From Schmidtea polychroa (Eukaryota), in assembly GCA_044892525.1 (NCBI GenBank), contig CM097885.1, positions 168,826,001-168,890,000 on the forward strand: DNA of 64,000 nucleotides. Direction: 5' to 3'. The translations under genes and the position numbers were made by a program. Positions 4,080 to 51,363 of this stretch are shown piece by piece. Under the pieces are notes generated by a model, which was not told the origin of the DNA, did no database searches, and saw nothing but the letters and a program-made list of their open reading frames with translations. Each line of letters opens with the position of its first letter. The first letter of the stretch is position 1.

Positions 4080-7000
4080 ATGTGTTTTAAAATATGTCCC
4101 GTATGTAAGACTAGTGACCCCGTAACATATAGCGTTTTTTATAATAAACATAAAAATCATTTAGATAGGTTTAATTTTAAAAAAGATAGTGTTTTTAAAA
4201 GACCCTCAACTATAGAAAAAAATAATAAAAATAAAAAAATTAAATTAGATACTTCTTCTTTTGAATCCCAGGTCGGATTGCCTTTTGTGGAATCCAATGA
4301 TGGATTGGTTGTCGAATCCCATGATGGATTGGTTGTTGAATCCCAGGTCGGATTAGATAATATTTCCCTTGACTCTTGGGATGGATTAAATATAATACAA
4401 ATAGGTGGAAATGTTCCAATAATACAAAAAGATCTAAGAGGTACCCATCAAATATTAAGCTTAAATACAAGCGACTTAAATATAAAAGAAATAATATTTC
4501 CTGAACAACTAATAAAAAAATTACGAGATATTATTAACGAATTAGGCTCCGTCAAAATTCAATTCGGAATAACAATCGAATTTGAAAAAGACGGGGAAAT
4601 AAAGGTTAATAATATCTCAAATTATGCAAAGCCTTTAACTGCATCATTTTTTGACGAAGGCATTAGGGAACTAAACGAGAAAATAAGTAATATCACAGAG
4701 TTAGGAAGTAGCTGGATCATAAAAAAAATAACAGAAATTCACTTCACCATAACAAAGATAAGTAGGCTAAGTAGATTAAGTGGTAGAAGTTTCATTGAAC
4801 TACCTACTTATCTAAAAAATAAATATTGTTTAATTAATATAAAAAACACCGATGATTCATGTTTTTTATATAGCATTTTAGCTATTTTAAAATATGATGA
4901 GGTTAGTAGTTATGCTAGAAATAGGACATCCAGTTATAATTTATCTGAATTAATATATAATCCATTGGACTTACCCATGAAATTAAAAGATATTAGAAAA
5001 TTCGAGGCCAAAAATCCTGGTTTAATAATTAACGTTTTTTCTTATGACAATAACAAACAATTAATAGATAATTACGTTTTAAAACACCCACATTTAGACA
5101 TTATACATCGTTCCAAAGTTTTAAATGGAACTGTAATTAATTTACTATTATTAAATAAAGGGAACAATTTCCATTACGTTGCTATAAGCAATTTAAATAG
5201 GTTATTGAATTGTGGTATCAACACTACTTGTCCTACACGCATACGTTCATTATGGTGCCATCGGTGTTTGAATGGGTTTAATAATAGAAACGCACTAGAA
5301 AAACATGAAATATTATGCAAACGTAATCAATTAGGAACAACTCTTTATACTTTCCCTCAAAATAAATTCTTACAGTTTACTGACTGGTCGAAAACAGTAA
5401 CTCCTCCTTTTGTAGTTTATGCAGATTTTGAGGCTATTTTACCTTCTGATAATGATCATTTCCAACGACACATGCCAATATCTGCTGGTCTTTTACTTGT
5501 AAATAACTTTGACGGATCTAAATCTTATCAGCAGTTCATAGGTTTAGATTGCGTCGAGAGTTTTTTAAGTGCTATAGAGGATATAGCATTAAATAAGGTT
5601 CTTCCTTTTTATTATAAAATGGGTAGGAAACCTATGATGAAATTAACAAAAATTGAACAACGTCAATTTGTTAGTGCATCTGTTTGTTATCTTTGTATGA
5701 AATCTATCGTCGATCCTGTTAGAGATCACGATCATTTTACGGGGAAATACTTGGGTGCAGCTTGTAGCACATGTAACGTAAATAGGAAAATAAATAAAAT
5801 TTTGCCTATCGTATTTCACAACTTGAAGGGATACGATATGCACCATATACTTAAATATGGATTAAATAAATTTAAAAATTGGAATTTAGGGTGCATCCCA
5901 ATAACTACGGAAAAATTTATATCTTTGATTGCTCATTTAGGTAAAATTAGCCTAAGATTCATTGATTTGTATCAATTTGTCAATGATTCTTTGGCTAAAG
6001 CAGTCAAAACTTTGAATTCTTTGCCTTTTACTAATTCTGCTTTTTCTGGCACCATAGTAAGTGAAAAAGGAATCTTCCCTTATAATTTCGCCACTTCTTT
6101 AGATATTCTCCAAACTACTTATGAATTACCACCAATCTGGGAGGGTGTCACTGAGCTTGAGTATGAAAAAGCTCAGGAGATTTGGGTAGAAACTAATTGC
6201 GTAACTTTATTAGATTATATGATGATCTACCTAAAACTTGATTGTTTTCTTTTGGCTGATTTCTTTCATCAGTTTCGGTTGAAATCCATTGCTCACAATA
6301 GATTGGAACCATTGAATTATTTCGGAATTCCAGGCATGTCTTGGTCTTCTGCATTAATGTCTTTAAATGAACCAATTGAACTCATAACTGAAAACGAAAT
6401 GTTTAGCTTTTATGAGGGTGGAATAAGAGGCGGTCTTACTTTTGTGAATAAGCATTACGTAAAAACCGACGAGAACACTGAGTTACTATATATAGATATT
6501 AATAATCTTTATGGCTGGGCTTTAAGTCAATCATTACCTTGTGGCGAATTTTGTTGGGTTCTTGATGGATTTGATAAAATAATGGATGAATGTAGGAATT
6601 TAAATCTTGAATCTTTGTCTTATGGATACACACTTGAAGTTGATCTTGTAATTCCTTCTGAGCTTCATGATAAGTTGGATGATTTCCCTGTAGCTGCTGA
6701 AAAAATGAAACCTGCTGGGTCTAAGGTTGAAAAATTATTATTAACTCATCTTCCAAAATCTAATTATGTTATTCATTGGAGATTATTAAAATTATATTTG
6801 GAACTTGGTGTTAAAGTAACACGTGTAAATAGGGGTGTAAGATTTAAGCAATCACCAATTTTTAAAAAATATATAGATACAAATACTGAATTAAGATCAA
6901 AAAGCGTAAATAGCTTAGATAAAAATTATTATAAATTGCTAAATAATAGTTTATACGGCAAAACAGTTGAAAATTTAAAGAGAAGAATGAATCTTCGTCT

Positions 7001-7847
7001 TTGTACAACTGCCGGTAAATTAGTTAAATATTCGTCAAAACCAACTTTTAAAAAATCTATTAAAATAGCAGATAATTTAATTGCAGCACTATTGAATTCA
7101 GATTCTATATGTTTAGATAGACCGAGTTACATTGGTCAATCTGTACTTGATCTATCTAAACTTAGAATGTATGAATTGCAATATAAGGATCTGGAATCAA
7201 TTCGCAATGAGTTTAATTGTAAAATTAATATCGTTGCAGGTGATACAGATTCTTTTTTCCTCGAAGTCATTAACTGCAAACTTGAGGTTCTTTTACCTGC
7301 AATGGTTCGAGATAATTTATTGGATACTTCCAATTACAATAGTTGTCATTCCTTATATAGTAAGAACCTTGATTCAGTCATTGGAAAGTTCAAAGACGAG
7401 AATAAAGGTCTTAAATATAAGGAGTGGGTTTTTCTTAGACCTAAATGTTATAGCTTGTTGAGTGATGAGGAAACAAAAAAGGCTAAAGGTGTAACATTGA
7501 AAGGTAGTGACATAAAACATCAGTCATACCTGGATTGTTATAACACTAACCAGATTTTTTCGGTTCCTCAGACTAAAATAACAAGCAAAAATCATCAAAT
7601 TTTTACAATTAAAAACACAAAAATAGCACTAACTAACAAAGATGACAAAAGGGTTTGGGTGGGGAAAAATACTAGTCTTGCATATGGGCATGTAAGATTA
7701 AGTGAATTAAATATTGGAGAAAATGTTGGAGAAATTGTTGCAGAAAATGTTGGAGAAAATGATGGAGAAGATGAGGAAGAATTAAATGAAGATTTTGGAG
7801 AAGATGACATCGATATCGATGACGTTATTTTGTCCGATGAGGACTAA
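4080..7847 (+). CDS. Protein-primed family B DNA polymerase (Polinton/Maverick type) with C2HC zinc finger, HNH/EndoVII insertion and acidic tail, 1255 aa
   Basis: ExoI YADFE (D449/E451), ExoII HNLKGYD, ExoIII YLKLD, motif A DINNLYG (D806), long TPR1-like insert, motif B KLLNNSLYGK (K952), TPR2-like insert, motif C AGDTDS (D1055/D1057), RPKCY, KAKGV; intronless open frame. Confidence 0.95.
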   Translation: MCFKICPVCKTSDPVTYSVFYNKHKNHLDRFNFKKDSVFKRPSTIEKNNKNKKIKLDTSSFESQVGLPFVESNDGLVVESHDGLVVESQVGLDNISLDSWDGLNIIQIGGNVPIIQKDLRGTHQILSLNTSDLNIKEIIFPEQLIKKLRDIINELGSVKIQFGITIEFEKDGEIKVNNISNYAKPLTASFFDEGIRELNEKISNITELGSSWIIKKITEIHFTITKISRLSRLSGRSFIELPTYLKNKYCLINIKNTDDSCFLYSILAILKYDEVSSYARNRTSSYNLSELIYNPLDLPMKLKDIRKFEAKNPGLIINVFSYDNNKQLIDNYVLKHPHLDIIHRSKVLNGTVINLLLLNKGNNFHYVAISNLNRLLNCGINTTCPTRIRSLWCHRCLNGFNNRNALEKHEILCKRNQLGTTLYTFPQNKFLQFTDWSKTVTPPFVVYADFEAILPSDNDHFQRHMPISAGLLLVNNFDGSKSYQQFIGLDCVESFLSAIEDIALNKVLPFYYKMGRKPMMKLTKIEQRQFVSASVCYLCMKSIVDPVRDHDHFTGKYLGAACSTCNVNRKINKILPIVFHNLKGYDMHHILKYGLNKFKNWNLGCIPITTEKFISLIAHLGKISLRFIDLYQFVNDSLAKAVKTLNSLPFTNSAFSGTIVSEKGIFPYNFATSLDILQTTYELPPIWEGVTELEYEKAQEIWVETNCVTLLDYMMIYLKLDCFLLADFFHQFRLKSIAHNRLEPLNYFGIPGMSWSSALMSLNEPIELITENEMFSFYEGGIRGGLTFVNKHYVKTDENTELLYIDINNLYGWALSQSLPCGEFCWVLDGFDKIMDECRNLNLESLSYGYTLEVDLVIPSELHDKLDDFPVAAEKMKPAGSKVEKLLLTHLPKSNYVIHWRLLKLYLELGVKVTRVNRGVRFKQSPIFKKYIDTNTELRSKSVNSLDKNYYKLLNNSLYGKTVENLKRRMNLRLCTTAGKLVKYSSKPTFKKSIKIADNLIAALLNSDSICLDRPSYIGQSVLDLSKLRMYELQYKDLESIRNEFNCKINIVAGDTDSFFLEVINCKLEVLLPAMVRDNLLDTSNYNSCHSLYSKNLDSVIGKFKDENKGLKYKEWVFLRPKCYSLLSDEETKKAKGVTLKGSDIKHQSYLDCYNTNQIFSVPQTKITSKNHQIFTIKNTKIALTNKDDKRVWVGKNTSLAYGHVRLSELNIGENVGEIVAENVGENDGEDEEELNEDFGEDDIDIDDVILSDED

Positions 7848-22040: not shown

Positions 22041-25000
22041 ATGCAATCGAGTAAATATGATCCAACCAATTTAATAAGTAGTCTTTCTTTAGAATATAAA
22101 AATGCTAGAGAGAAAAAAATAAACAATAAAATCACAAAATACAACAATAAACAAAAGACAATTCGAATATTTATTTCATCAACTTTTCGGGATTTTCACA
22201 ACGAAAGAAATTTACTGGTCACGAAAGTTTTCCCTAGACTTCGTGAGTGGTGCGCAAATCACGGCTTGTATTTGGTTGAATGTGATTTACGATGGGGCAT
22301 TCCGGCAGATTCGTCGAGAGAAGAAACTTTAATGACATGTTTTGACGAAATAGAGAAAGGAAAACAAGAATGTAATGAAATGAATTTCTTTTTGGGTTTG
22401 ATTGGAGACAGATACGGTTGGATTCCAAGTGAAGCCGAAATAACAGAGAATATTAGAAAAAGGTAATTTTTGTGAAATGTTTAAGATTATATTAAATATT
22501 TATTAAATTATTAAGTTACAATTACTGTTGAAATGAAAATTGTATGATACATATTATCTTTAATTAAATTATTTTGTAATTTTTTGAATTACCGTTTTTT
22601 CCTCCAGGTACTGCGTTATCTACACAAAAAATATCAAAATACACAGAGGAAAAATTGTATTTCAAAGCGAACGTTATTTCATTGTAATTGTTATGCTTTT
22701 CTTATAGTAATGGAAATTTACAACAATTCTTCACATTTTAAAAATCTGGTAAACTTTCTTTTCGTCAAATGGAAATTTAAATTATTTCCTAGTGAAAATA
22801 ATTATTCAATTAAAAAAATACATGTTTTACCACGTAATTGAAGCATTTCCATATTCTACGATTTCAATTAGTAATACCTTTAAATATATCAGTTTTTAAT
22901 GCAACATATGAAACATTAACATTTAGTGTTCTAACCTAATTCAACATACTAGCTAGTTTATTTTAAGCTTGTTATTATTATAAAATAAACGAATAAAACG
23001 ACTAGAAGGGTCATGGAGCCGTTAAATGGAACTAACCTCTAGAATCAAAGACATTTTAGAAGATTTATTGAATATTAAATTACTGAATATGAAATTCTTT
23101 TTCAAAATCGCTAAAAAATAAATAAATACAAAACAATATTTAATTGGGTTAAAATTGTTTATTTTCCCAAATACAATTGTATTCTTCTACAATTTCTTGG
23201 TCTTCAAGCATCTAGGAACCTCCTGGTGATTTCAGGAAACCGTTTCTGACACATGTTGTTGTAACTGCACCCCAGCTATCAATGATCCAACTGCATATGT
23301 CACTCTACGGTAGCTATTCATTTTCCCAGTCTTAGTGTATTCTTTAACACCACTCATCATCCAATCCTCCCATTTTGCCCGCTACTTGGTTTTAAACGAA
23401 TTATTTATTGTTAGATCAAGAAGTTGAACTAGTTTCGCCAATCTACTTAGAATTATGGCTTGTTTAGAAAATTTCATGTTGGTTTCTATTACGTCTGGTA
23501 TTGTATGTGCAAAACATGAGTCCATTATCAACAATGATTTTGAATTAAAAAAAGCTCCTTTTTGTTTACTCCAAACGTTTTCCACTAAAACTTTCATCAC
23601 CTTGTGGACCACGAGTCGTGGTTGACCCACCTTTTATCATCAGCGGTAACTATAATATCATTAGGAAATTATTATAAGAACTTTTTTTCCAATTTCACCA
23701 CTGATTATTTTTTCCATCGAATTTATTAAAAAGAGAGCTTGAAGCCTATAAATCAGAAATATATCGATGTTTTTTGATACTCACGAATTTTCGGCACTGC
23801 CTTTTTCAAGTGAAAGAGTACATCCAACCAATCTTCAACAAAGTTTTTATCTCTGAAAGCTTCAAAAACATCGGCCAACAGAAAATTATCCAGCTTAAGG
23901 TACACTTGCTAATAATCTAACAGCGTCTCACAGTTGTAATGGTGCCATATTTGGTTGAAATGTAATTATTCTGTTTGATTAATTTCTGGTGAAATTCTGG
24001 TGAAATACCTCCATTGATGTAGTAATATCATAAGAAAAAATGTCATTACTAGTTATTAACTGTCAACCAAAAACTTTGAAGTAACTGGAAGACTTGGTAA
24101 ACATTTTGATAAATTTGCAATACTGTTATTTAAAAATCGCAAGGAATCAATGAATCTAATTCTTCTTCAATCTGTTGTCGCTTTAAGTGTGAGAAATCTT
24201 TCTTTTTATTAGAGAATAACAATTAAATTCCCCGACCTGAAAAATATTTTTCAGACTGAGATGGAAATTACAATCAGAGAGCTAATAATGCCGCTGAATG
24301 TGAGTAAGAGTACTATTTATAGATTACTCAGTGAAAGTGGCATAAGAAAATTATGCTCTCGCTTTGTATAACGTTTTGAACTACTGAAATGCAGTGCTAC
24401 TAAGAGAATTTTCAGATTTTGGATGATATTGGAGAGGATATTTTAGGATAATATTATTACCATGGATGAGACACTACTTTCGCTTTATGTTCCACAATTT
24501 AAACGGGAATCTACAGTGTGGAAACTACTCCTGAAATCTGTTCTTTAAAGATGAGGTCATCAACAAATCACGGAAAGGCGCTCATATTGACTGTGTTTTC
24601 GGATGTCACTGGCATTATTCTAGCTGATTTTGCCCAAAATGGTGTTCAAATTAACAAATCCTGCTACTTCGAACTTGCACAGGAAGCATGGAAACTCCGA
24701 AAGAAAGGTCGGGTGTGTGGGCTTTATTATTTACACGATTACCCTCCCATTCATACAAATTGAAATTAGATTTAACACATTTATTTAATTAAATTTAAAA
24801 GATCATTTATTTAAATTTAAATTTTATATTAAAATAAAATTCTGAGAGTGGAAAATATTTTTCATTTCTATTTTATTGTAAAGCTATCATAATTATATAT
24901 GCATGTTAAAATTAGGGCTAATTTAATGACTTGCGCTGAAATGAAGTTCTATGCATATCTACTGCTATCTGTACCAAAAATCAATATGATATTCATAGCA

Positions 25001-27282
25001 CGTCAAGTGAGTAGTTCTATCTGCAAGTTAGATATTATAGAACGCTCGACTTCCTAATATAATTTAAAATAACATGTCAACTCGCTGCAAATTACTTTGG
25101 GTGGTTTTGCTATTCGAGCATTTTAATTAACTCCTGGTGCAAGTGGTTAATAACTAGGCTTTATCAATTACATTTTAGGAATATTTGATAAGAATACTTG
25201 TATTTTATTTTAAATCTAAGGTACAAATGGATAGATGGAAGCTCAGTTACTTTAATGGAGATACTTCATGGAATGATTCGAACTCTAACTCCAAATGGTC
25301 TTCTTATGGTAAGATTGCCAGATTTTATTAAAGATCTTCCAGATAATTTGAGATCTGAATTTCTGGAAACGGATCCTATGGCAGCATCAAATTTAAATAT
25401 CTTTAAAGAATTTTTAAAAAATACTTTTGAGAAGCATAATTCTTTTCATTTTTATAGTGCCTCTTATGACGGAGTTGTCTATGATAAATTCATTGATAAA
25501 AAAAGAGTTCTTGTAAAATTGGATGACTTTGAAAATCAAATTGAAAAACATTTTATCAAATGCATTAAAGAAAATTTTTTACTATTTAAAGATGAAAAAG
25601 CTGACAACATTGATGAAGTTCATGAAGTTATGGTTGAATGCCTTACAAATCAAAATCCAATACCCCATGAGACTTTTCAAAAGCTTTTTGATACTCTTAA
25701 AAGTAAGCTGTCTAAAAAAGAAAGAAGTTCAAATTCTATTTTTATGCTTTCCGGAGAAGCTGGATCTGGAAAATCTACAACCTTAGCACACTGTGCAAAA
25801 ATATTGAAGGATTTTCCGAATTGTGATTCGTTTTTTCATAGTTTTTCCTGCACTTCTAACAGTATGTATAACACGACCATTTGTGAAAGACTTTATAGAT
25901 TTCTCTCAACTGACAATTTAAATCCTAATAAATCTTATTTAGAGAAAAAGAATAAGATTAGTTATTTATTAGAAAACGGACCGAAACGTCATGACAAAGA
26001 TGTGTTTTACGTTTTCTTGGATGGTATTGATGAAATGTCAAGTGATCAAACATTAGGGTGGCTTCCGAAATTAACTTCTGAACGTATTGTTATAATAATT
26101 AGTTGTTTACTAGATACCTCTCCGTCATCTTTCTATTCCAATTTACACAATTCCGACAAGTCTATTTCGGAATTATCAATACAAGTAATGCCAAAGACTC
26201 AATTATGTGAAATGGTAAAGAATTATCTCGACAGTTTCGGTAAAAAGCTCGACGTTGACCAACTCAATTGCTTAATGAGCTTCAAAAATTCAAACAATCC
26301 ATTGTGGTTGATTTCAGCTTGTGAAGAATTAAGAATTCATGGAGACTACTTTTCTCTGACAAAATTTATTTTGTCTCTTCCGTCTACGATCTGTGAACTG
26401 AATAAAATGGTTATTAAAAGACTGATAAATCAAGATTCAAAAAATATCTTGAAAACATTTTTACAACTTTTGGTCATTTCTAAGAGTGGATTGTGGGAAA
26501 GTTTAATAAAGAATATGTTGGCAATGAAGTTAGACAGTGCTCAACCTGTAAGCCATTCATTATGGACAGAAATTGTATGCCATTTGAAAGGATTCCTACT
26601 GATACAATCCATGTCTTTGCCGTTAATCAAATTTCGACATAGGGTCATGAAGGCGGCTATTGAAGAAGAGTTGGCGATGAGTGATAAATTCCAATTAAAT
26701 CTCCATTACGAAATGTCGGTGTTCTTTGAAAATATAATTGGAAATTCTGGAGATTTGTTTCTAGCAGATTACATTTATCATTTAATCAAGTCGAATTCTC
26801 GAAATCGTTTGATTAAATTCATTCGAACTCGCAAATCGTGGAGAATCTTTAAAAACTCATTTATTCGAGGAAAAATTGTTTCAAGTATGCGTTGCATGAA
26901 TTGCGTTGTGAATATACCTTCACAGAAGTCTCAAGAATTAATGATGTGTCAAACGTGTAAGTTCGTTTCTGGAGAATTAGCGGAGCATGCAATGAATAAG
27001 AACAGTTGTTATTTCTGTGGAACATTTGTATTTAATAATAATGGTGATGTTGCTAAACTTTATCCGTGCCAATTTCACAGGCACCCAATTGTGAGTTTAA
27101 TAAAATGTAGTCTATGCGAAAATCCAATAGGAGGAAAAGGAGAGAGCCTCAAAGTTTGTCAGATGTGTAAATTGCAAAATCTTTCTGGGAGCTGTGGGGT
27201 AATAGTTAAGGAAGAGGACATTTTGTTTCATCAACAACTTGAGTATAGTCATTCAGTTTATCGCATTGAATCGTTAATTTAA
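22041..27282 (+). CDS. DUF4062-like / STAND (NACHT-like) NTPase / PHF5-like zinc-knot protein, paralog A; exons 22041-22462 and 25221-27282, 827 aa
   Basis: RIFISSTFRDF...ECDLRWG...FLGLIGDRYGW (DUF4062-like, as in the TEP1/NWD/NPHP3 family); Walker A GEAGSGKST; Walker B VFLDGIDE; GT-AG phase-2 intron rejoins in frame (422+2062 nt = 828 codons). Confidence 0.85.
23200..23950 (-). mobile_element. Degraded pogo/Tigger-like DDE transposase fragment in the paralog A intron
   Basis: SLLIMDSCFAH...LVQLLDLTINNSFKTK resembles the DDE_1 LLxxDxxxxH...QPLD...FK motifs; multiple stops. Boundaries approximate. Confidence 0.65.
24200..24763 (+). mobile_element. Degraded mariner (DD34D-type) transposase fragment in the paralog A intron
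   Basis: HTH region VSKSTIYRLL, IITMDET, LTVFSDVTGIILADF, LHDYPPIHT; frameshifts and stops. Confidence 0.75.
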
Positions 27283-27399
27283 ACAATTTGGAACTTGTTA
27301 ACTTTTGTCTATAAATAAATTTCATTAAATGATGTTGTTGATCTCATAAATATATGAGATGCGTCTAATAATTAGTAAATAAAATAAAAAAAACATTGT

Positions 27400-33117: not shown

Positions 33118-35755
33118 ATGTACAGAAAACACGTTAGTTTAATCGACAAAAATGACCCAATATCTGCAGATCATATCAAATCATCCCTTTGGGACCAAAT
33201 TGAATTTGAATATTCAAAAGCTTTGATGAATAATCGCTATCGTGACTCGTCTGTTGATAAAGATTTAAAAGTAATTCGAATTTTTATTTCTTCGACATTC
33301 AAAGATTTCTACAATGAAAGAGATATATTGGTAAGAAATGTGTTTCCAAAATTACGGAAATGGTGTGAAGAACAAGGATTGTTTCTTGTGGAGTGTGATT
33401 TAAGATGGGGTGTACCTGTTGATGCTACAAATTTGGAAGCTGTTTCATATTGCTTGGATGAAATTGAAAAATCAAGAGAAGAAACAAATAATAATAACTT
33501 TTTCCTTTGTTTAATTGGAGAAAGATTTGGATGGGTACCATCGGAAGAAACGCTGTTGGAAAAATTGAAACTCAAGTAAAAATTTATTTATTATAAATAA
33601 TTGTATTATAGAAAAATATATTTAAAGAATTTCACTGAATATTAACTTAGTAACTAATGTAAATATTTTGATTAATTACAATTATTAAAACAATAAAAAT
33701 ATTTTCAGATATGATTTTATCAAAGACAGTTCAGTAACTTTAATGGAAATTGTTCATGGTGTGTTGAGAAGTGGAACAGAAAATAGTCTTTTTATGATTC
33801 GATCTAAAAATATTCTGGAAAATATGCCGAAATCGCATTTAAAATATTTTGAAGAAAGTGATAAATTATTAAAGTCTAATGTTAACGAACAGAAAGAATT
33901 TATTAAAAAGCATTTTTCAAAATCTGGTTGTGTAAAGGATTATTCTATTAATTATGAATCAACTGTTGTTGATCCAATATCTGGAAAAGAAAGAATTCAA
34001 TTTTCAGATTTTGATGAATTTTCGAAAATTGTAGAGGATTATTTTAAATCTCAGATTTTAGATTTTAAAGTCAAGCATAAATTGTCACTTGCAGTGGAAG
34101 ATCAAAATGAGGATATGATTCATAAATCTCATTTAGTTTCTATAAATAAAACCTCTTTAAAACGAATGTCGTACATTGAATTTTTAAGCAATCAAATAAA
34201 AAATTCAAATTTGGAAAACGAAAGGAATCCCATTATTATTATAACCGGTGAGGCAGGTTCCGGCAAATCAACAATAATTTCTCACATTATTGAATATTAT
34301 TCAAATCTTGAAAACGAAAATGTATTTTATCATTTTTGTGGTGCCTCGAATACGAGTCACAGTCAATTGAGTATTCTTAAAAGGTTAGAAAATTATTTGA
34401 AATTAGTTCTTAATCTTGATGTTTCAATTTCTAACGAAGAAAATCCTAATTTAAGTAAGTCATTGGAAAACCTTTCCGAACCAAAACTGAAAATTTTCAT
34501 CGACGCATTAGATGAATTATGGGACTTGGATATTGTGAACCAATTTCCGAAATTTACTTCAAAAAACATTCAACTTATAGTTTCATGTTTATGTGACACA
34601 GGTATAGATTCTTTTTACTCAAAATTTATGACTCAGGACTTTGTCTATATTCAGTTGCCCATTGAAAAAATGAATACTATTCAATTGATAGATATAACAA
34701 ATAAATATTTATACAACTTTGGTAAAAAATTAGATTCTCTCCAATTAGATAAATTGTTGAGCTTTGAAAATTCTCACAATCCTTTATGGCTTCTTTCAGC
34801 TTGTGAAGAATTACGAATGCATGGAGACTATTCCAGTCTTACAAAATTAATAACTTCACTTCCTCCTTCGATAATAGATTTAAATAGAATGATTATTAAA
34901 AGATTGTCTAACCAAGATGTGACAAACATCCTCAAAACGGTTTTACAATTATTAGTAATTTCAAGAGCCGGAATATGGGAAAGTCTGATTAAAGATATTC
35001 TAGCTGAAATTTTAAATTTTTCTGAGCCAATAAGCCATTCTACTTGGTCACACATTATGTGGCAATTAAAGGGATTTCTGTTAATCCAGTCGATTCCTTT
35101 ACCGTTAATAAAAATTCGTCATCGGGTAATGAAAGAATCCATTGAAGAAGAATTATCAATGGATGAAGAGTATAAAATAACACTTCATCATAAGATTTCT
35201 ATATATTTAGAAAAACTATACGATAACGAGAGTGATGTATTTCTTTCAGATTACATGTATCACCTTGTGAAATCAAATGCACGAAATCGAATGATAGATT
35301 TTATGAGAAGTAGGAAATCCTGGAAAGTTTTGAAACAGCCTTTTGTGCGCTCAAGAATCATGCTGAGTACGAGATGCATCAATCCAAAATTGACAGACAA
35401 ACAAAGCGCGTTGATGATGTGTATTCGATGTGCAAACAAATCTGGTGAATTGTCCATTTTTTCGATCAATAGGAACAGTTGCTTTTTTTGTGGCAACCTT
35501 GTTGCAGCTAATAACAACGATGAGAATAAACTGTTTCCATGTCAATTTCATAAAAATCCCAATCCACAGTTGGGGAAATGCACTCTATGCAACTCGATCG
35601 TACCGTCAAAACAAGGAGAACCGGTGAAAGCGTGTCAAATGTGCAGTTTAAACAACCCAAGAAACTGTGGAATCATTGTCAATGAAAAAGACATTCTATA
35701 TCGCCAACAGCTGGGATTCAGCAAAGCAGTTTACAGAATTGAATCGATAATATAA
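33118..35755 (+). CDS. DUF4062-like / STAND (NACHT-like) NTPase / PHF5-like zinc-knot protein, paralog B; exons 33118-33575 and 33709-35755, 834 aa
   Basis: Same motifs as paralog A (RIFISSTFKDF, GEAGSGKST, IFIDALDE, NPLWLLSACEELRMHGD); 133-nt phase-2 GT-AG intron at the same position; 458+2047 nt = 835 codons. Confidence 0.88.
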
Positions 35756-38973: not shown

Positions 38974-40735
38974 TAGGCCTACCATGAACCTTTTGAAAAA
39001 ATCTGGGACATTTTCAAAATAACCGGGACACAAAAACAAATCAATTTAATTATGAAAAAATATATTTATTAACAATAAATATTTAATTTTGATACTTTTC
39101 TTGGGAGTGAATCATTTCAAGCAACTGAAAGTTTGATTTAATTTTCTTGTAAAACTACAACTAATTTTTGAGTTATATTGTAGAGAAGCGGTCGGGGGAA
39201 CCGGGGTAAATTACCTCAAATGGGGTAAAAAATGAAATTTTTGGGGGTAAAAATGAAACTTTTGTGAGTAAAAAGTATATATTTTTAATTTACTATTTTA
39301 TGAACCTGTTAGTATTTTTTTCAACTTAAATAATTTAGCGACATATGCAGGCCACGCCATCTCACTCCCCACCACTAGAGTGTTCTCGAGTTATATCTTT
39401 GCGCAGTAAAGCACAGCCCCAGCTACCTGCTCAGTCCGTGCCATGCCGTCAAGATACAAATACATTGACGAGTTAGAGAGCTAGTTTTTACTAGTTAGTT
39501 GCTGACAAGACCACCATTTTATCATTAATCATCGATATATCGATCAAGATAAGCAGCAATTTAAAAATTTAATTCAAGTATTTTACAACTATTATTTTCT
39601 GTCGCCCTTCAGATGGCAGCAAATAGAAAAAGAACATACCAAGACGAATTCCTTAATTACGGTTTCACACAAATAGAAGACAATGGTACAATGAAACCAC
39701 AGTGTGTTATATGTATGAAGGTACTGACTTCAGAATCTTTCAAAATAAGTCAATTGAAGAAACATTTAGATAATTTGCATTTACACTGTCTTCCAAACCG
39801 CGAGAATACTTTGCAAATTTAGAAATATCTGTTAAAAGACAAAGATTGAATAGCAACTTGTTTGGTACATTTGATCAGCATTCAGCATCAAGGGCTAACT
39901 TTGAAATGGCCTGGTTGATTGCTCAAATAAGAAACCATACACTATTGGTGAAGATTTGGTTAAACCAGCTGCTGTAAAAATGGCAGAGATTATGTGTGGT
40001 CGAAAAGAAGCGAAGAAACTGAATTCAGCGCCCTTGTCTGCGAGAATTGTGAAAGAACGAATTTCTATATTAGCAGAAAATGTGAAGGAACAGGTTATTT
40101 TCGCATTAAAACAGGCTAAATATTTTGCTATTCAGCTTGATGAGACAACTGATTTTAGTAGCAATTCACAGCTAATGGTATATGTTCGCTACAAAGGTGC
40201 AGATAATTTTGAAGAGGAATTGCTGTTTTGTTCTCCTCTCGATTTGAGATCTCGTGGAATTGATGTCTACAATAAAGTAAATGAATACTTCAATGCGCAA
40301 AGTTTAAAATGGGAAAACTGTATTTATGTATCTTTGGATGGAGCTCCAGTTATGCCGGGTCATATTAATGGTTTTTCGGCTTTCGTAAAAAAAATAACCC
40401 AAATATTGAAGTAACTCACTGTATGATCCATCACCAGGCCCTTATGGTCAAATATTTAGAACCTACACTGGCATCCGTCATGATGTCATCAAGATTGTAA
40501 ATTTTATCAAGGGACATGCACTAAACACGCGGCTATTTCGTGAATTATGTCAGGACGGTGAAGCTGAATATACGGACCTACTTTATTATACAAAAGTAAG
40601 GAAATGTACTAAATCGAGTATGGACTCTCAAAACTGAAGTCGAAATTTTTATGGTTGATCAATAATATAGTCTCGCAGATAAGTTTAAAAACTAAATTGT
40701 CAACCCTCAATTGTACCCCAATGGGTTTCAATTTG

Positions 40736-48957: not shown

Positions 48958-51363
48958 TTAGGGTGGGTCGAAAATTTTTTTTTTCTCCAAACATGCCTAA
49001 AATGTTGTGCTTATGCTAGAAAATGAAATATCCCTGCAAAAGACTGCTGTTTAAAAGGGTTTACAGGTCCCAACTTTTGTTTGTATGTATTAGTACTATC
49101 CCAGTAAAAATGCTCGCACACGTGCCATTGTAAATTCATCCTGCAAGCAGTCACACGCTTGCAGAAAGACCATTTTTGACATGCTCGATTCACAAGTCCA
49201 AGCTAACGCGTGCATGTATAGAGAGGTTAATTCACGGAAGCACCTTCACACAAGCACTCACAAAGACAATTTCTTCTAAACAATACTAACACACACACTA
49301 CAGTCAACACATAATCCACATGGATACTACTAGTCAGTCTAAACTCAGATAATTTAATTTGTTTCGATTGGATGTCAAGTGTTTGCTGGACCTAATTAAA
49401 AAAGTTAACTTGATGATTCACTTTTATTTTGCCAGAGCTGAGTACAGAAGAGCAGTTATGAAGGGACAGAGAAATGAGCAACAGAGACACATGTTTGCTA
49501 GTAAACGCTTTTCTGAAAGATATGGAACTGTTATCCTCTCAAACAATCATCGATCCCGCAAAATTACGGCGTCAGAGAAAGTACTGGAGGGAGAGAGAAA
49601 TCGAACAGCATTCAGCAGAAGCGAAAAACTTGATTTGCCTCGGTTTCGACGGGAAACAAGATTCCATCTTACTTCATAGAAGGATCCTAAAAGAGGAGCA
49701 TTATGTGATTGTCGCCTTTCCAGGGGATACATATATCGATCATGCTGTACCTCAAAGTAGTAAAGCTGTGGATATTGGCAAAGAAATCATGTCAATCATC
49801 GTTAGCACGCAGTCCTCACTGACCATTCAAGCAATTGTGTGCGATGGAACCAATACAAACACCGGAAAAAATAATGGAATAATCATAAGACTCGAAAAAA
49901 GCCTAGGGCGACCTCTACAATGGCTGATATGCTTGTTGCATGCAAATGAATTGCCATTCAGGAAGTATTTTTCAGTCGTCGATGGTGGAGAAACAAAAGG
50001 TCCAAAAACGTCATGTGGTGAAATAGGAAGCGTTCTTGATTTTGATCCAAAAGACAAGCCCTTAGTAGCCTTTATGTCCCTTCCTGGAAAGGTCGTAGAT
50101 ATTAGTGAAAATGTCAAGAAAGAATTGAACACTGATCAATTGTATTTCCTCAGAGTATGCTTGGCAGTCCAGAAAGGGTACCACAACAACAAGGATGTCC
50201 CTTTTCTACAAATGGCACAACCAGGAAATTTGAATCACAGTCGCTGGCTAACGAAAGCTAATAGAATTCTGCGACTATATATGTCCGAAACTGCTCCATC
50301 TGAACCTCTCATGCGAATAGTGAAATTTATTGTCAATTTCTATGGACCGTCATGGTTTTATATAAAGACTCACTCGTCATGCCAAGATGGTGCAAGAAAT
50401 ATTTTTTATATGCTCCAACTTCTGCAGGATTTGGATCCATCAGACCAAGAAATCATCTTTCCTGTCATTCAGAACAACAATTACTTCTCACATCCAGAAA
50501 ATATACTCCTAGCTGCTGTTGGTGATGATGATGAAGAAATCAGAAAGTTTGCAACAGAAAAAATCATAACTGCAAGACAAAATTTTCTCCCTTCCGAAGT
50601 GATTCGCACTACGGACAAGAATACTGTCTTTCTTCAGTCGTCTGCTACATCATATGTTGACATGATTGACTGGACAAAATGTAATTTGACGCCTCCCCCT
50701 CTTTTATCTCATATATTGGATCATGAATTGAAGATGAATAAGAAAATTACATTAGAACAATTTCCCTGTCATTCTCAAGCCGTTGAAAGAGCCATCAAAG
50801 ATGTTTCTTCTGCCAGTTGCAAAGTGTTTGGTCACAAGTCCAGACATGGTATGGTACTACTGTGTAAAAAATCAAGGAAGGAATTGCCCAAGGTGCAAAG
50901 CAAAGCTGATTTCATGTGACTTCTTTTTATGCCCTCGCTAATACATTTCTAAACTTTTGGCTGGATGTTTTTAATAAAAAATAATTTCGAAAGTTGATTT
51001 TTGTCTTTGAAAAGGATGATTCAAATTTGGCCCTTCCTAATCACTGACGTTGTCAGGATATATTTCAATGCGGGATGAGGACACAGAATATACTATCTCA
51101 GCCCAAGAGAGTAAATAATATACTTATAAGCTCTTAAGAAAGCTACATCTAAATATGGACAAAGGCGCAAAACACATTCCGACACTAGCCAAATTACATT
51201 GTTTTCACACTTATGTTGAACTGCATTTTCGGAGAAAAGTTGGGAGCAGTAAATGTCCATAAATCTAAGTAAAATGGTTTGATTCGATTTTTCTATACCA
51301 AAATACAACTTTTTAACCATGTTTCCTTTCTTGAACTCAAAATTTATTAACATTCGACCCACC

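Follow-up and report, generated by a model that had tools for sequence, protein, structure and literature searches.

A conserved, putative three-zinc domain at the sensor end of a TIR-like/NACHT STAND protein in Schmidtea polychroa

The genome of the planarian Schmidtea polychroa encodes two tandem paralogs, denoted here A and B, of a STAND NTPase that consists, from the N-terminus to the C-terminus, of a DUF4062 domain (TIR-like NADase fold), a NACHT/NPHP3_N P-loop domain, a helical region and a cysteine-rich, putative zinc-binding domain (hereafter, the tail). Both genes lie on the + strand of a 64,000-nucleotide stretch (assembly GCA_044892525.1, contig CM097885.1, positions 168,826,001 to 168,890,000 of the forward strand; hereafter, the window, to which all coordinates refer unless indicated otherwise), with B located about 8.5 kb downstream of A. 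The DUF4062-NACHT head-switch layout is known; a TIR-like/NACHT STAND protein with this zinc domain at its sensor end is new. We lean towards the interpretation of the protein as a STAND-type switch, with a TIR-like head, a NACHT domain, a helical region and a three-zinc tail at the sensor end, for which the zinc knot of the spliceosomal protein PHF5A is the best model. Our literature search for links between PHF5 and NACHT proteins, PHF5 and integrated domains, or planarians and NACHT found nothing relevant.

The tail of A (26887..27282, +) comprises 131 amino acids plus the stop codon, with a core of 12 candidate ligands between C3 and C103 (26893-27195), and that of B (35372..35755, +) retains 12 of the 12 ligands. 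These 11 cysteines and one histidine follow the order C, CxxC, CxxC, CxxH, CxxC, CxxC, C, with the codons in A located at 26893 (C3), 26947/26956 (C21/C24), 27007/27016 (C41/C44), 27067/27076 (C61/H64), 27106/27115 (C74/C77), 27157/27166 (C91/C94) and 27193 (C103). The initial annotation of this locus, made from paralog A, had described the same pattern, which we find confirmed and kept in B as well as in nine tails from other animals. In the alignment of these 11 sequences, C21, C24, C41, C44, G45, C61, H64, C74, C77, C91 and C94 are invariant and C103 nearly so; G29 and N37, along with G45, are invariant or nearly so, and the first, ‘RC’ ligand is found in every aligned tail whose sequence extends far enough. 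An extra cysteine, C6, which makes a CMNC motif, occurs in A only and is missing in B, so that the conserved ligand set is exactly one single ligand, five pairs and another single ligand. The ligand arithmetic that the annotation had equated with that of PHF5A is conserved in the 11 tails, with one histidine in place of a cysteine. Past C103, the sequence of tail A is GVIVKEEDILFHQQLEY, with a short helix predicted after the ligand core. The tail is basic, with an isoelectric point of 8.6 for the core of A and 9.05 for the whole tail of B.

Given this arrangement, the 12 ligands should bind three zinc ions, in two C4 sites and one C3H site. Because five pairs are flanked by two single terminal ligands, both ends of the chain would fall on one zinc site, together with one of the pairs. 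In the structure of PHF5A, the single cysteines at either end are brought together by the middle pair; in the tail, the middle pair contains the only histidine. This chemical argument for a PHF5A-like joining of the ends adds a little.

When 1.84 billion representatives were searched exhaustively with HMMER and a two-sequence tail profile, ten matches were obtained at E <= 1e-3, the best with an E value of 2.4e-8. Since a profile of only two sequences found 10 proteins at this threshold, the tail is, judged by sequence comparison, a real, conserved domain rather than a chance pattern. In the hemichordate Glandiceps talaboti, the 984-amino acid protein XP_077977671.1 combines DUF4062 and NPHP3_N/NACHT with the tail at its very end; a Pfam search detected no TPR in this protein at E <= 0.01, despite an NCBI name that follows TPR-containing relatives. 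Two tail matches reside on a 762-kb metagenomic animal contig that also bears Frizzled and SET genes and on which a chain of small exons encodes DUF4062 motifs, NACHT motifs, a helical end and then the tail, with a short intron preceding the first ‘RC’ ligand. A metagenome scan with the tail alignment identified one locus, 88% identical to one of the tails from the metagenomic contig (P0014).

The nearest relatives of the N-terminal two thirds of the protein are DUF4062-NACHT-TPR proteins of cnidarians, a nemertean and amphioxus (‘TPR repeat-containing protein DDB_G0287407-like’), with 24-30% identity and E values down to 1.7e-33. These proteins share the DUF4062, NACHT and helical portions with those encoded in the window but end in TPRs (PF13424, PF13374), where the window and Glandiceps proteins end in the zinc tail, and their matches cover only 61-81% of the exon 2 query. 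As the nearest relatives end in TPRs and match the N-terminal part only, the zinc tail occupies the TPR position; the C-terminal TPR array that characterizes this family is missing from A, with no TPR detected at E <= 1. The initial annotation of a STAND NTPase with a zinc domain at the sensor position is thus borne out, as is the reported lack of the common sensor repeats: a Pfam search of A for WD40, TPR and LRR families yielded 0 matches at E <= 1. No model in the Pfam copy searched covers the tail. On the strength of these alignments, the tail is an old, unannotated domain family, and the same architecture recurs in no fewer than two other animals, a hemichordate and a further invertebrate. 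An expanded receptor family was considered and ruled out, given that the NTPase part and the tail are each found only twice in the 781-Mb genome, namely, in A and B.

The N-terminal DUF4062 domain, whose description as a TIR-like NADase the initial annotation did not take into account, supplies the effector end of the protein. Pfam DUF4062 (PF13271) matches residues 42-133 of A, within exon 1 (22164-22439, +), with an E value of 1.9e-10 and a score of 41.2 bits against a cut-off of 24.7, and the Glandiceps homolog scores 39.5 bits. DUF4062 has been described as a TIR-like NADase with the catalytic glutamate E1008 in human TEP1, and TEP1, NWD1, NWD2 and NPHP3 have a common layout of DUF4062, NACHT, helical region and repeats; among these four human members, NADase activity in vitro was observed for TEP1 only (bioRxiv 10.64898/2026.05.01.722283). 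The N-terminus of the hemichordate protein matches the TEP1 TIR-like chain (PDB 11gz_A) with an E value of 7.3e-21, such that SMTHMEILHG is aligned with SVTEMEV of 11gz_A. The corresponding motif in A is SVTLMEILHG (25243..25272, +; residues 149-158), which contains E154, and the counterpart in B is SVTLMEIVHG, with E166. These two residues are likely the equivalents of the catalytic glutamate of TEP1; we infer the identity of the aligned glutamate with E1008 from the chain length.

The NTPase domain of A (25672..26223, +) matches PF24883 (NPHP3_N) with an E value of 5.1e-8 and 33.7 bits against a cut-off of 24.8; the score with the NACHT model PF05729, 25.7 bits, is slightly below its cut-off of 26.7. 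Both Walker motifs expected of a STAND/NACHT NTPase with a NACHT/NPHP3_N-type P-loop are present: Walker A, GEAGSGKS (25753-25776; residues 319-326), and a Walker B-like VFLDGIDE that begins at residue 405. Between the NTPase and the tail lies the helical region (26239..26886, +; residues 481-696).

Each of the two genes consists of two exons. In A, exon 1 (22041..22462, +), which encodes residues 1-140 plus 2 nucleotides, ends at a donor GT at 22463 and is followed by a phase 2, GT..AG intron of 2.7 kb (22463..25220, +) and by exon 2 (25221..27282, +), a single open frame for residues 141-827 plus the stop, in which the last part of the TIR-like domain is followed by the NACHT P-loop domain, the helical region and the tail. 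In B, exon 1 (33118..33575, +; DUF4062/TIR-like, donor read from the sequence) and exon 2 (33709..35755, +; NACHT, helical region and zinc tail) are separated by an intron (33576..33708) that is also GT..AG and phase 2, with a position identical to that in A, both junctions being read directly. The underlying open reading frames (ORFs), all on the + strand, are 22041..22466 (A) and 33118..33579 (B) for the DUF4062 portions and, downstream, 25198..27282 in A, with the cysteine-rich tail at its 3' end, and 33743..35755 in B. The spliced translations comprise 827 amino acids for A and 834 for B, with 0 stops in either, and are 44% identical over 686 residues. By region, the identity is 57% in DUF4062, 32% in NACHT, 61% in the helical region, which is the best-conserved part, and 50-52% in the tail.

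In the public RNA-type run X1, a 631-nucleotide contig that overlaps exon 1 of A links 22133-22459 straight to 25218-25521, with ‘aag’ common to both sides of the junction, and contigs of runs X1, X2 and X3 span exon 2 of A through the tail (25218-27299). These contigs confirm the transcription and the predicted splicing of gene A, and place the NTPase together with the tail on a single transcript. For exon 2 of B, 85% of the sampled words are present in run X1. Eleven small runs labelled as a second species (‘organism B’) each contain about 5% of the words sampled from this exon, which suggests a conserved ortholog of paralog B in a sister species with many transcriptomes.

The resemblance of the tail to PHF5A/Rds3/Ini1, a subunit of SF3b, includes the 12 ligands in the arrangement of a single, five pairs and a single, a C-x-(K/V)-I-V stretch at the last cysteine and, in one AlphaFold model of tail A (model 1), the predicted fold, PHF5A being the sole solved fold that this model resembles. 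This model was built with the 11-sequence alignment and has a predicted local distance difference test (pLDDT) score of 62, with 65-78 in the core, and a predicted template modeling score of 0.58. In a Foldseek search of PDB with model 1, PHF5A/Rds3 chains fill nearly all of the top ten positions, the matches being weak (E 0.2-1, template modeling (TM) scores 0.31-0.46). VIA-align superimposes model 1 on PHF5A/Rds3 with Z of 3.0-3.7 over 70-84 residues, and in a wide scan only 3 of 48,161 representative chains reach Z >= 2, led by human PHF5A (Z 3.5, root-mean-square deviation 4.0, 76 residues aligned, model 10-110 on chain 14-91) and yeast Rds3 (Z 3.1). Among the Swiss-Prot models, Ini1, PHF5A and Rds3 have the best TM scores, and the top row from ESM Atlas is a PF03660 (PHF5) cluster (TM 0.46 by query and 0.63 by hit, 83 aligned, root-mean-square deviation 3.1), all subsequent rows being at or below 0.39. 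Ahead of PHF5A, model 1 matches the C-terminal ends of unnamed proteins of 300, 347 and 897 amino acids in AlphaFold DB (prob 0.94-1.0), which probably belong to the family and, in that case, would predict this shape independently.

At the sequence level, PHF5 (PF03660; cut-off 26.7 bits) is the top-scoring Pfam family over the 11 tails. Using hhalign, the tail alignment was aligned colinearly with 60 PHF5 sequences over 62 columns (P 0.0012, probability 19.5%, score 26.5), pairing C41 with C30, C74 with C58, C91 with C72, C103 with C85 and GVIVK with PKIVN; against the PHF5A of the same genome alone, P was 0.0025. The score of 26.5 exceeded 150 of 150 column shuffles, including those with the ligand columns fixed. 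Other searches with the tail recovered little: BLASTP against the genome's own PHF5A gave an E value of 0.78 in the wrong register, a word-index search produced no match and was uninformative, and the look-alikes retrieved with a protein language model, all below 0.9, were generic zinc ribbons.

Altogether, we put the chance that the tail adopts a PHF5A/Rds3-like zinc knot, as predicted by model 1, at about even; the knot proposed in the initial annotation is supported by this model and not by the Pfam score, the second model or the order of the modules. The principal competitor, which we consider a serious possibility that is nevertheless less probable than the switch with a PHF5A-like knot as its best model, is a three-zinc tail whose fold differs from that of PHF5A and may be new, such as one of interleaved treble-clef or zinc-ribbon knuckles. 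The likeness to PHF5A would then amount to the ligand count and generic CxxC knuckles, and model 1 would reflect pattern recall rather than homology. A number of observations weigh in this direction and against the knot. The PHF5 assignment was not upheld by Pfam: PF03660 does not match tail A at E <= 1, a six-frame scan of the genome at E <= 10 misses the tails while detecting the true PHF5A, and only 3 of the 11 tails obtain scores (22.0, 19.7 and, for tail B, with an E value of 0.0083, 16.8 bits), all below the cut-off. Moreover, the sub-threshold alignments are shifted in register, with pair 4, pair 5 and the last cysteine of the tail placed on pairs 2, 3 and 4 of PHF5. Searches of PDB sequences with tail profiles yielded no PHF5A at E <= 10 and only noise (RING, PHD, C2H2, NudC). 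When the five CxxC modules are permuted as blocks, a stricter control than column shuffling, the hhalign scores average 23.6 ± 3.1, with the native order in only 19th place among 120; hence, what hhalign detects is a likeness common to CxxC knuckles in general, which does not demonstrate colinear homology, and we do not count it as support. The spacer between pairs 1 and 2 is 16 residues long in the tail versus 3 in PHF5A, and the strongest non-cysteine motif of the family (G29-x-L-S ... N37-K) sits in the resulting 13-residue stretch that PHF5A lacks. Confidence in model 1 is middling, and the other four models of the same job are at pLDDT 42-54. Furthermore, the structural check by AlphaFold and Foldseek proposed along with the initial annotation led to PHF5A/Rds3 with model 1 and not with model 2, in which family member P0013 was the target with the same alignment: at pLDDT 54, this model matches only generic L28, ZZ, RING, zinc-ribbon and HVO_2753-type zinc modules, with Z <= 2.7. 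What counts against a different fold is that searches of four structure libraries with model 1, by two aligners, point specifically to PHF5A/Rds3 and no other fold scores comparably, that the single terminal ligands and five pairs oblige both chain ends to share a zinc site, which is the arrangement in PHF5A, and that the sole histidine is in the pair that joins the single cysteines there.

The origin and the role of the tail are open to two further interpretations. The initial annotation had envisaged a spliceosome-derived domain analogous to the integrated decoys of plant NLRs. In this reading, which we regard as the least probable of those considered here, the tail would be a copy of spliceosomal PHF5A that serves as a decoy or bait for pathogen factors attacking SF3b. 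It would account for the PHF5A ligand arithmetic, for a fold that may be the same and for the position where a STAND NTPase has its sensor; yet structural alignments give just 15-19% identity between the tail and PHF5A, compared with at least 82% identity among true PHF5A proteins from plants to animals, and a bait would have to keep the surfaces of its target. Because the same architecture is found in a hemichordate and another invertebrate, that is, in distant animal phyla, the tail appears to be an old, diverged domain rather than a recent, lineage-specific integration, and the receptor has only two copies and has not expanded into a family. Plant NLR receptors with integrated domains likewise carry a non-repeat domain on the sensor end of a STAND NTPase, but the tail differs from these in being ancient and very far from PHF5A. 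Plant integrated decoys are recent and lineage-specific, and stay close to the host target. The presence of two genome copies only, and deep conservation instead of lineage expansion, also speak against the immune-receptor aspect of the switch interpretation, and are as compatible with a fixed cellular role as with an immune one. Such a role, namely, a housekeeping scaffold in which the zinc tail anchors the protein to a fixed partner (possibly an SF3B1/SF3B3-like HEAT or propeller protein) or to RNA, seems unlikely to us. It is in line with the few copies, the deep conservation, a basic tail compatible with nucleic acid contact, and the non-immune roles of human DUF4062-NACHT proteins, of which only TEP1 is NADase-active in vitro (10.64898/2026.05.01.722283). 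Against it, there is no evidence for a partner, and the overall divergence of A and B, particularly in the NACHT domain, is fast for a housekeeping pair.

In the STAND-type switch that we infer, the tail of A and B would bind zinc, perhaps in a PHF5A-like fold, and act as the sensor, and the head would be an active NADase. By analogy with APAF-1 and the model put forward for TEP1, the zinc module would be a ligand-binding or docking end that, when unengaged, would hold the NACHT switch off. Once engaged, the module would free the NACHT domain to oligomerise, bringing the TIR-like heads together for NAD+ cleavage or TIR-type signalling. APAF-1 follows the same logic, with an effector-recruiting head, a STAND NTPase, a helical domain and a C-terminal sensor that keeps the switch off, but its head is a CARD, its sensors are WD40 repeats and it has no zinc domain. 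Human TEP1, NWD1, NWD2 and NPHP3 resemble A and B in the head-switch layout and the retained glutamate motif, and differ from them by WD40 or TPR sensor ends and the absence of a zinc tail, with TEP1 additionally containing TROVE and vWA domains (10.64898/2026.05.01.722283). The comparison with PHF5A has an analogous limit: PHF5A is a free-standing, extremely conserved protein of about 110 amino acids, whereas the tail is the C-terminal domain of an 827-amino acid NTPase.

DUF4062-NACHT proteins have only recently been recognised as TIR-like NADase switches. The replacement of a repeat sensor by a compact zinc module of about 105 residues that is kept across phyla provides a small, tractable handle for probing what such a switch responds to; RNA interference tests are routine in flatworm-type animals. 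Should the tail indeed adopt the PHF5A knot, this fold would for the first time be seen in use outside SF3b, and Pfam/InterPro would gain a new domain family. A bolder, highly improbable scenario is that the tail represents a genuine PHF5-fold knot of ancient divergence that, as a sensor, binds the features recognised by PHF5A within SF3b, namely, bulged branch-site-like RNA or an SF3B1/SF3B3-type surface, and drives a TIR-like/NACHT death switch, which would couple perturbation of the splicing machinery or RNA, for instance, by viruses, to NAD+ depletion in invertebrates.

Several additional observations concern PHF5 itself. The true PHF5A gene of this genome is intronless, encodes 109 amino acids and scores 161 bits with PF03660 (C1:256273634-256273945, corresponding to 1483-1812 on the - strand of the extracted piece); it is located on the same chromosome, about 87 Mb from the window. 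Two other loci, about 340 kb apart, show the same weak PF03660 match (E 1.49, 18.2 bits) in a 157-amino acid open frame. One of these loci was read (273-1355 + and 1495-1959 - of the extracted piece) and contains a 154-amino acid ORF with CxxC pairs near both ends, beside a 360-amino acid ORF built of the 17-residue tandem repeat MDKLRRGCLLSLGFSWQ. The PF03660 cluster that best matches in ESM Atlas is labelled ‘Bacteria 50%, commonest Promethearchaeota’, the phylum being known for 2 of its 111 members, and PHF5-like proteins may thus exist outside eukaryotes, for example, in Asgard archaea.

The intron of A contains transposon debris and a very high-copy repeat. Two short ORFs lie within it, at 23382-23630 (-) and 24518-24763 (+), the latter matching a fragment of the mariner-type Transposase_1 DDE domain (PF01359, E 1e-4), and it is this decayed mariner-type transposon that accounts for the difference between the 2.7-kb intron of A and the 133-bp intron of B. 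The repeat at 23556-23923 is present in extremely high copy: the summed contig depth in the DNA run X5 is 1.5-2.7 million, compared with about 185-500 in most adjoining bins, with many rearranged joints, and the repeat is abundant in the RNA-type run X1 too.

Elsewhere in the window, the ORFs 39956-40414 (+), of 152 amino acids, and 49474-50919 (+), of 481 amino acids, match no Pfam family at E <= 0.05 and may be transposon-derived. An intact ORF of 1255 amino acids (4080-7847, +) matches no Pfam family at E <= 0.001 and shows a weak Endonuclease VII-like match at residues 532-567 (E 0.0023). Polymerase-like motifs, such as GDTDS and YGKT, are recognizable in it by eye, and it may belong to a large mobile element as its protein-primed polymerase.

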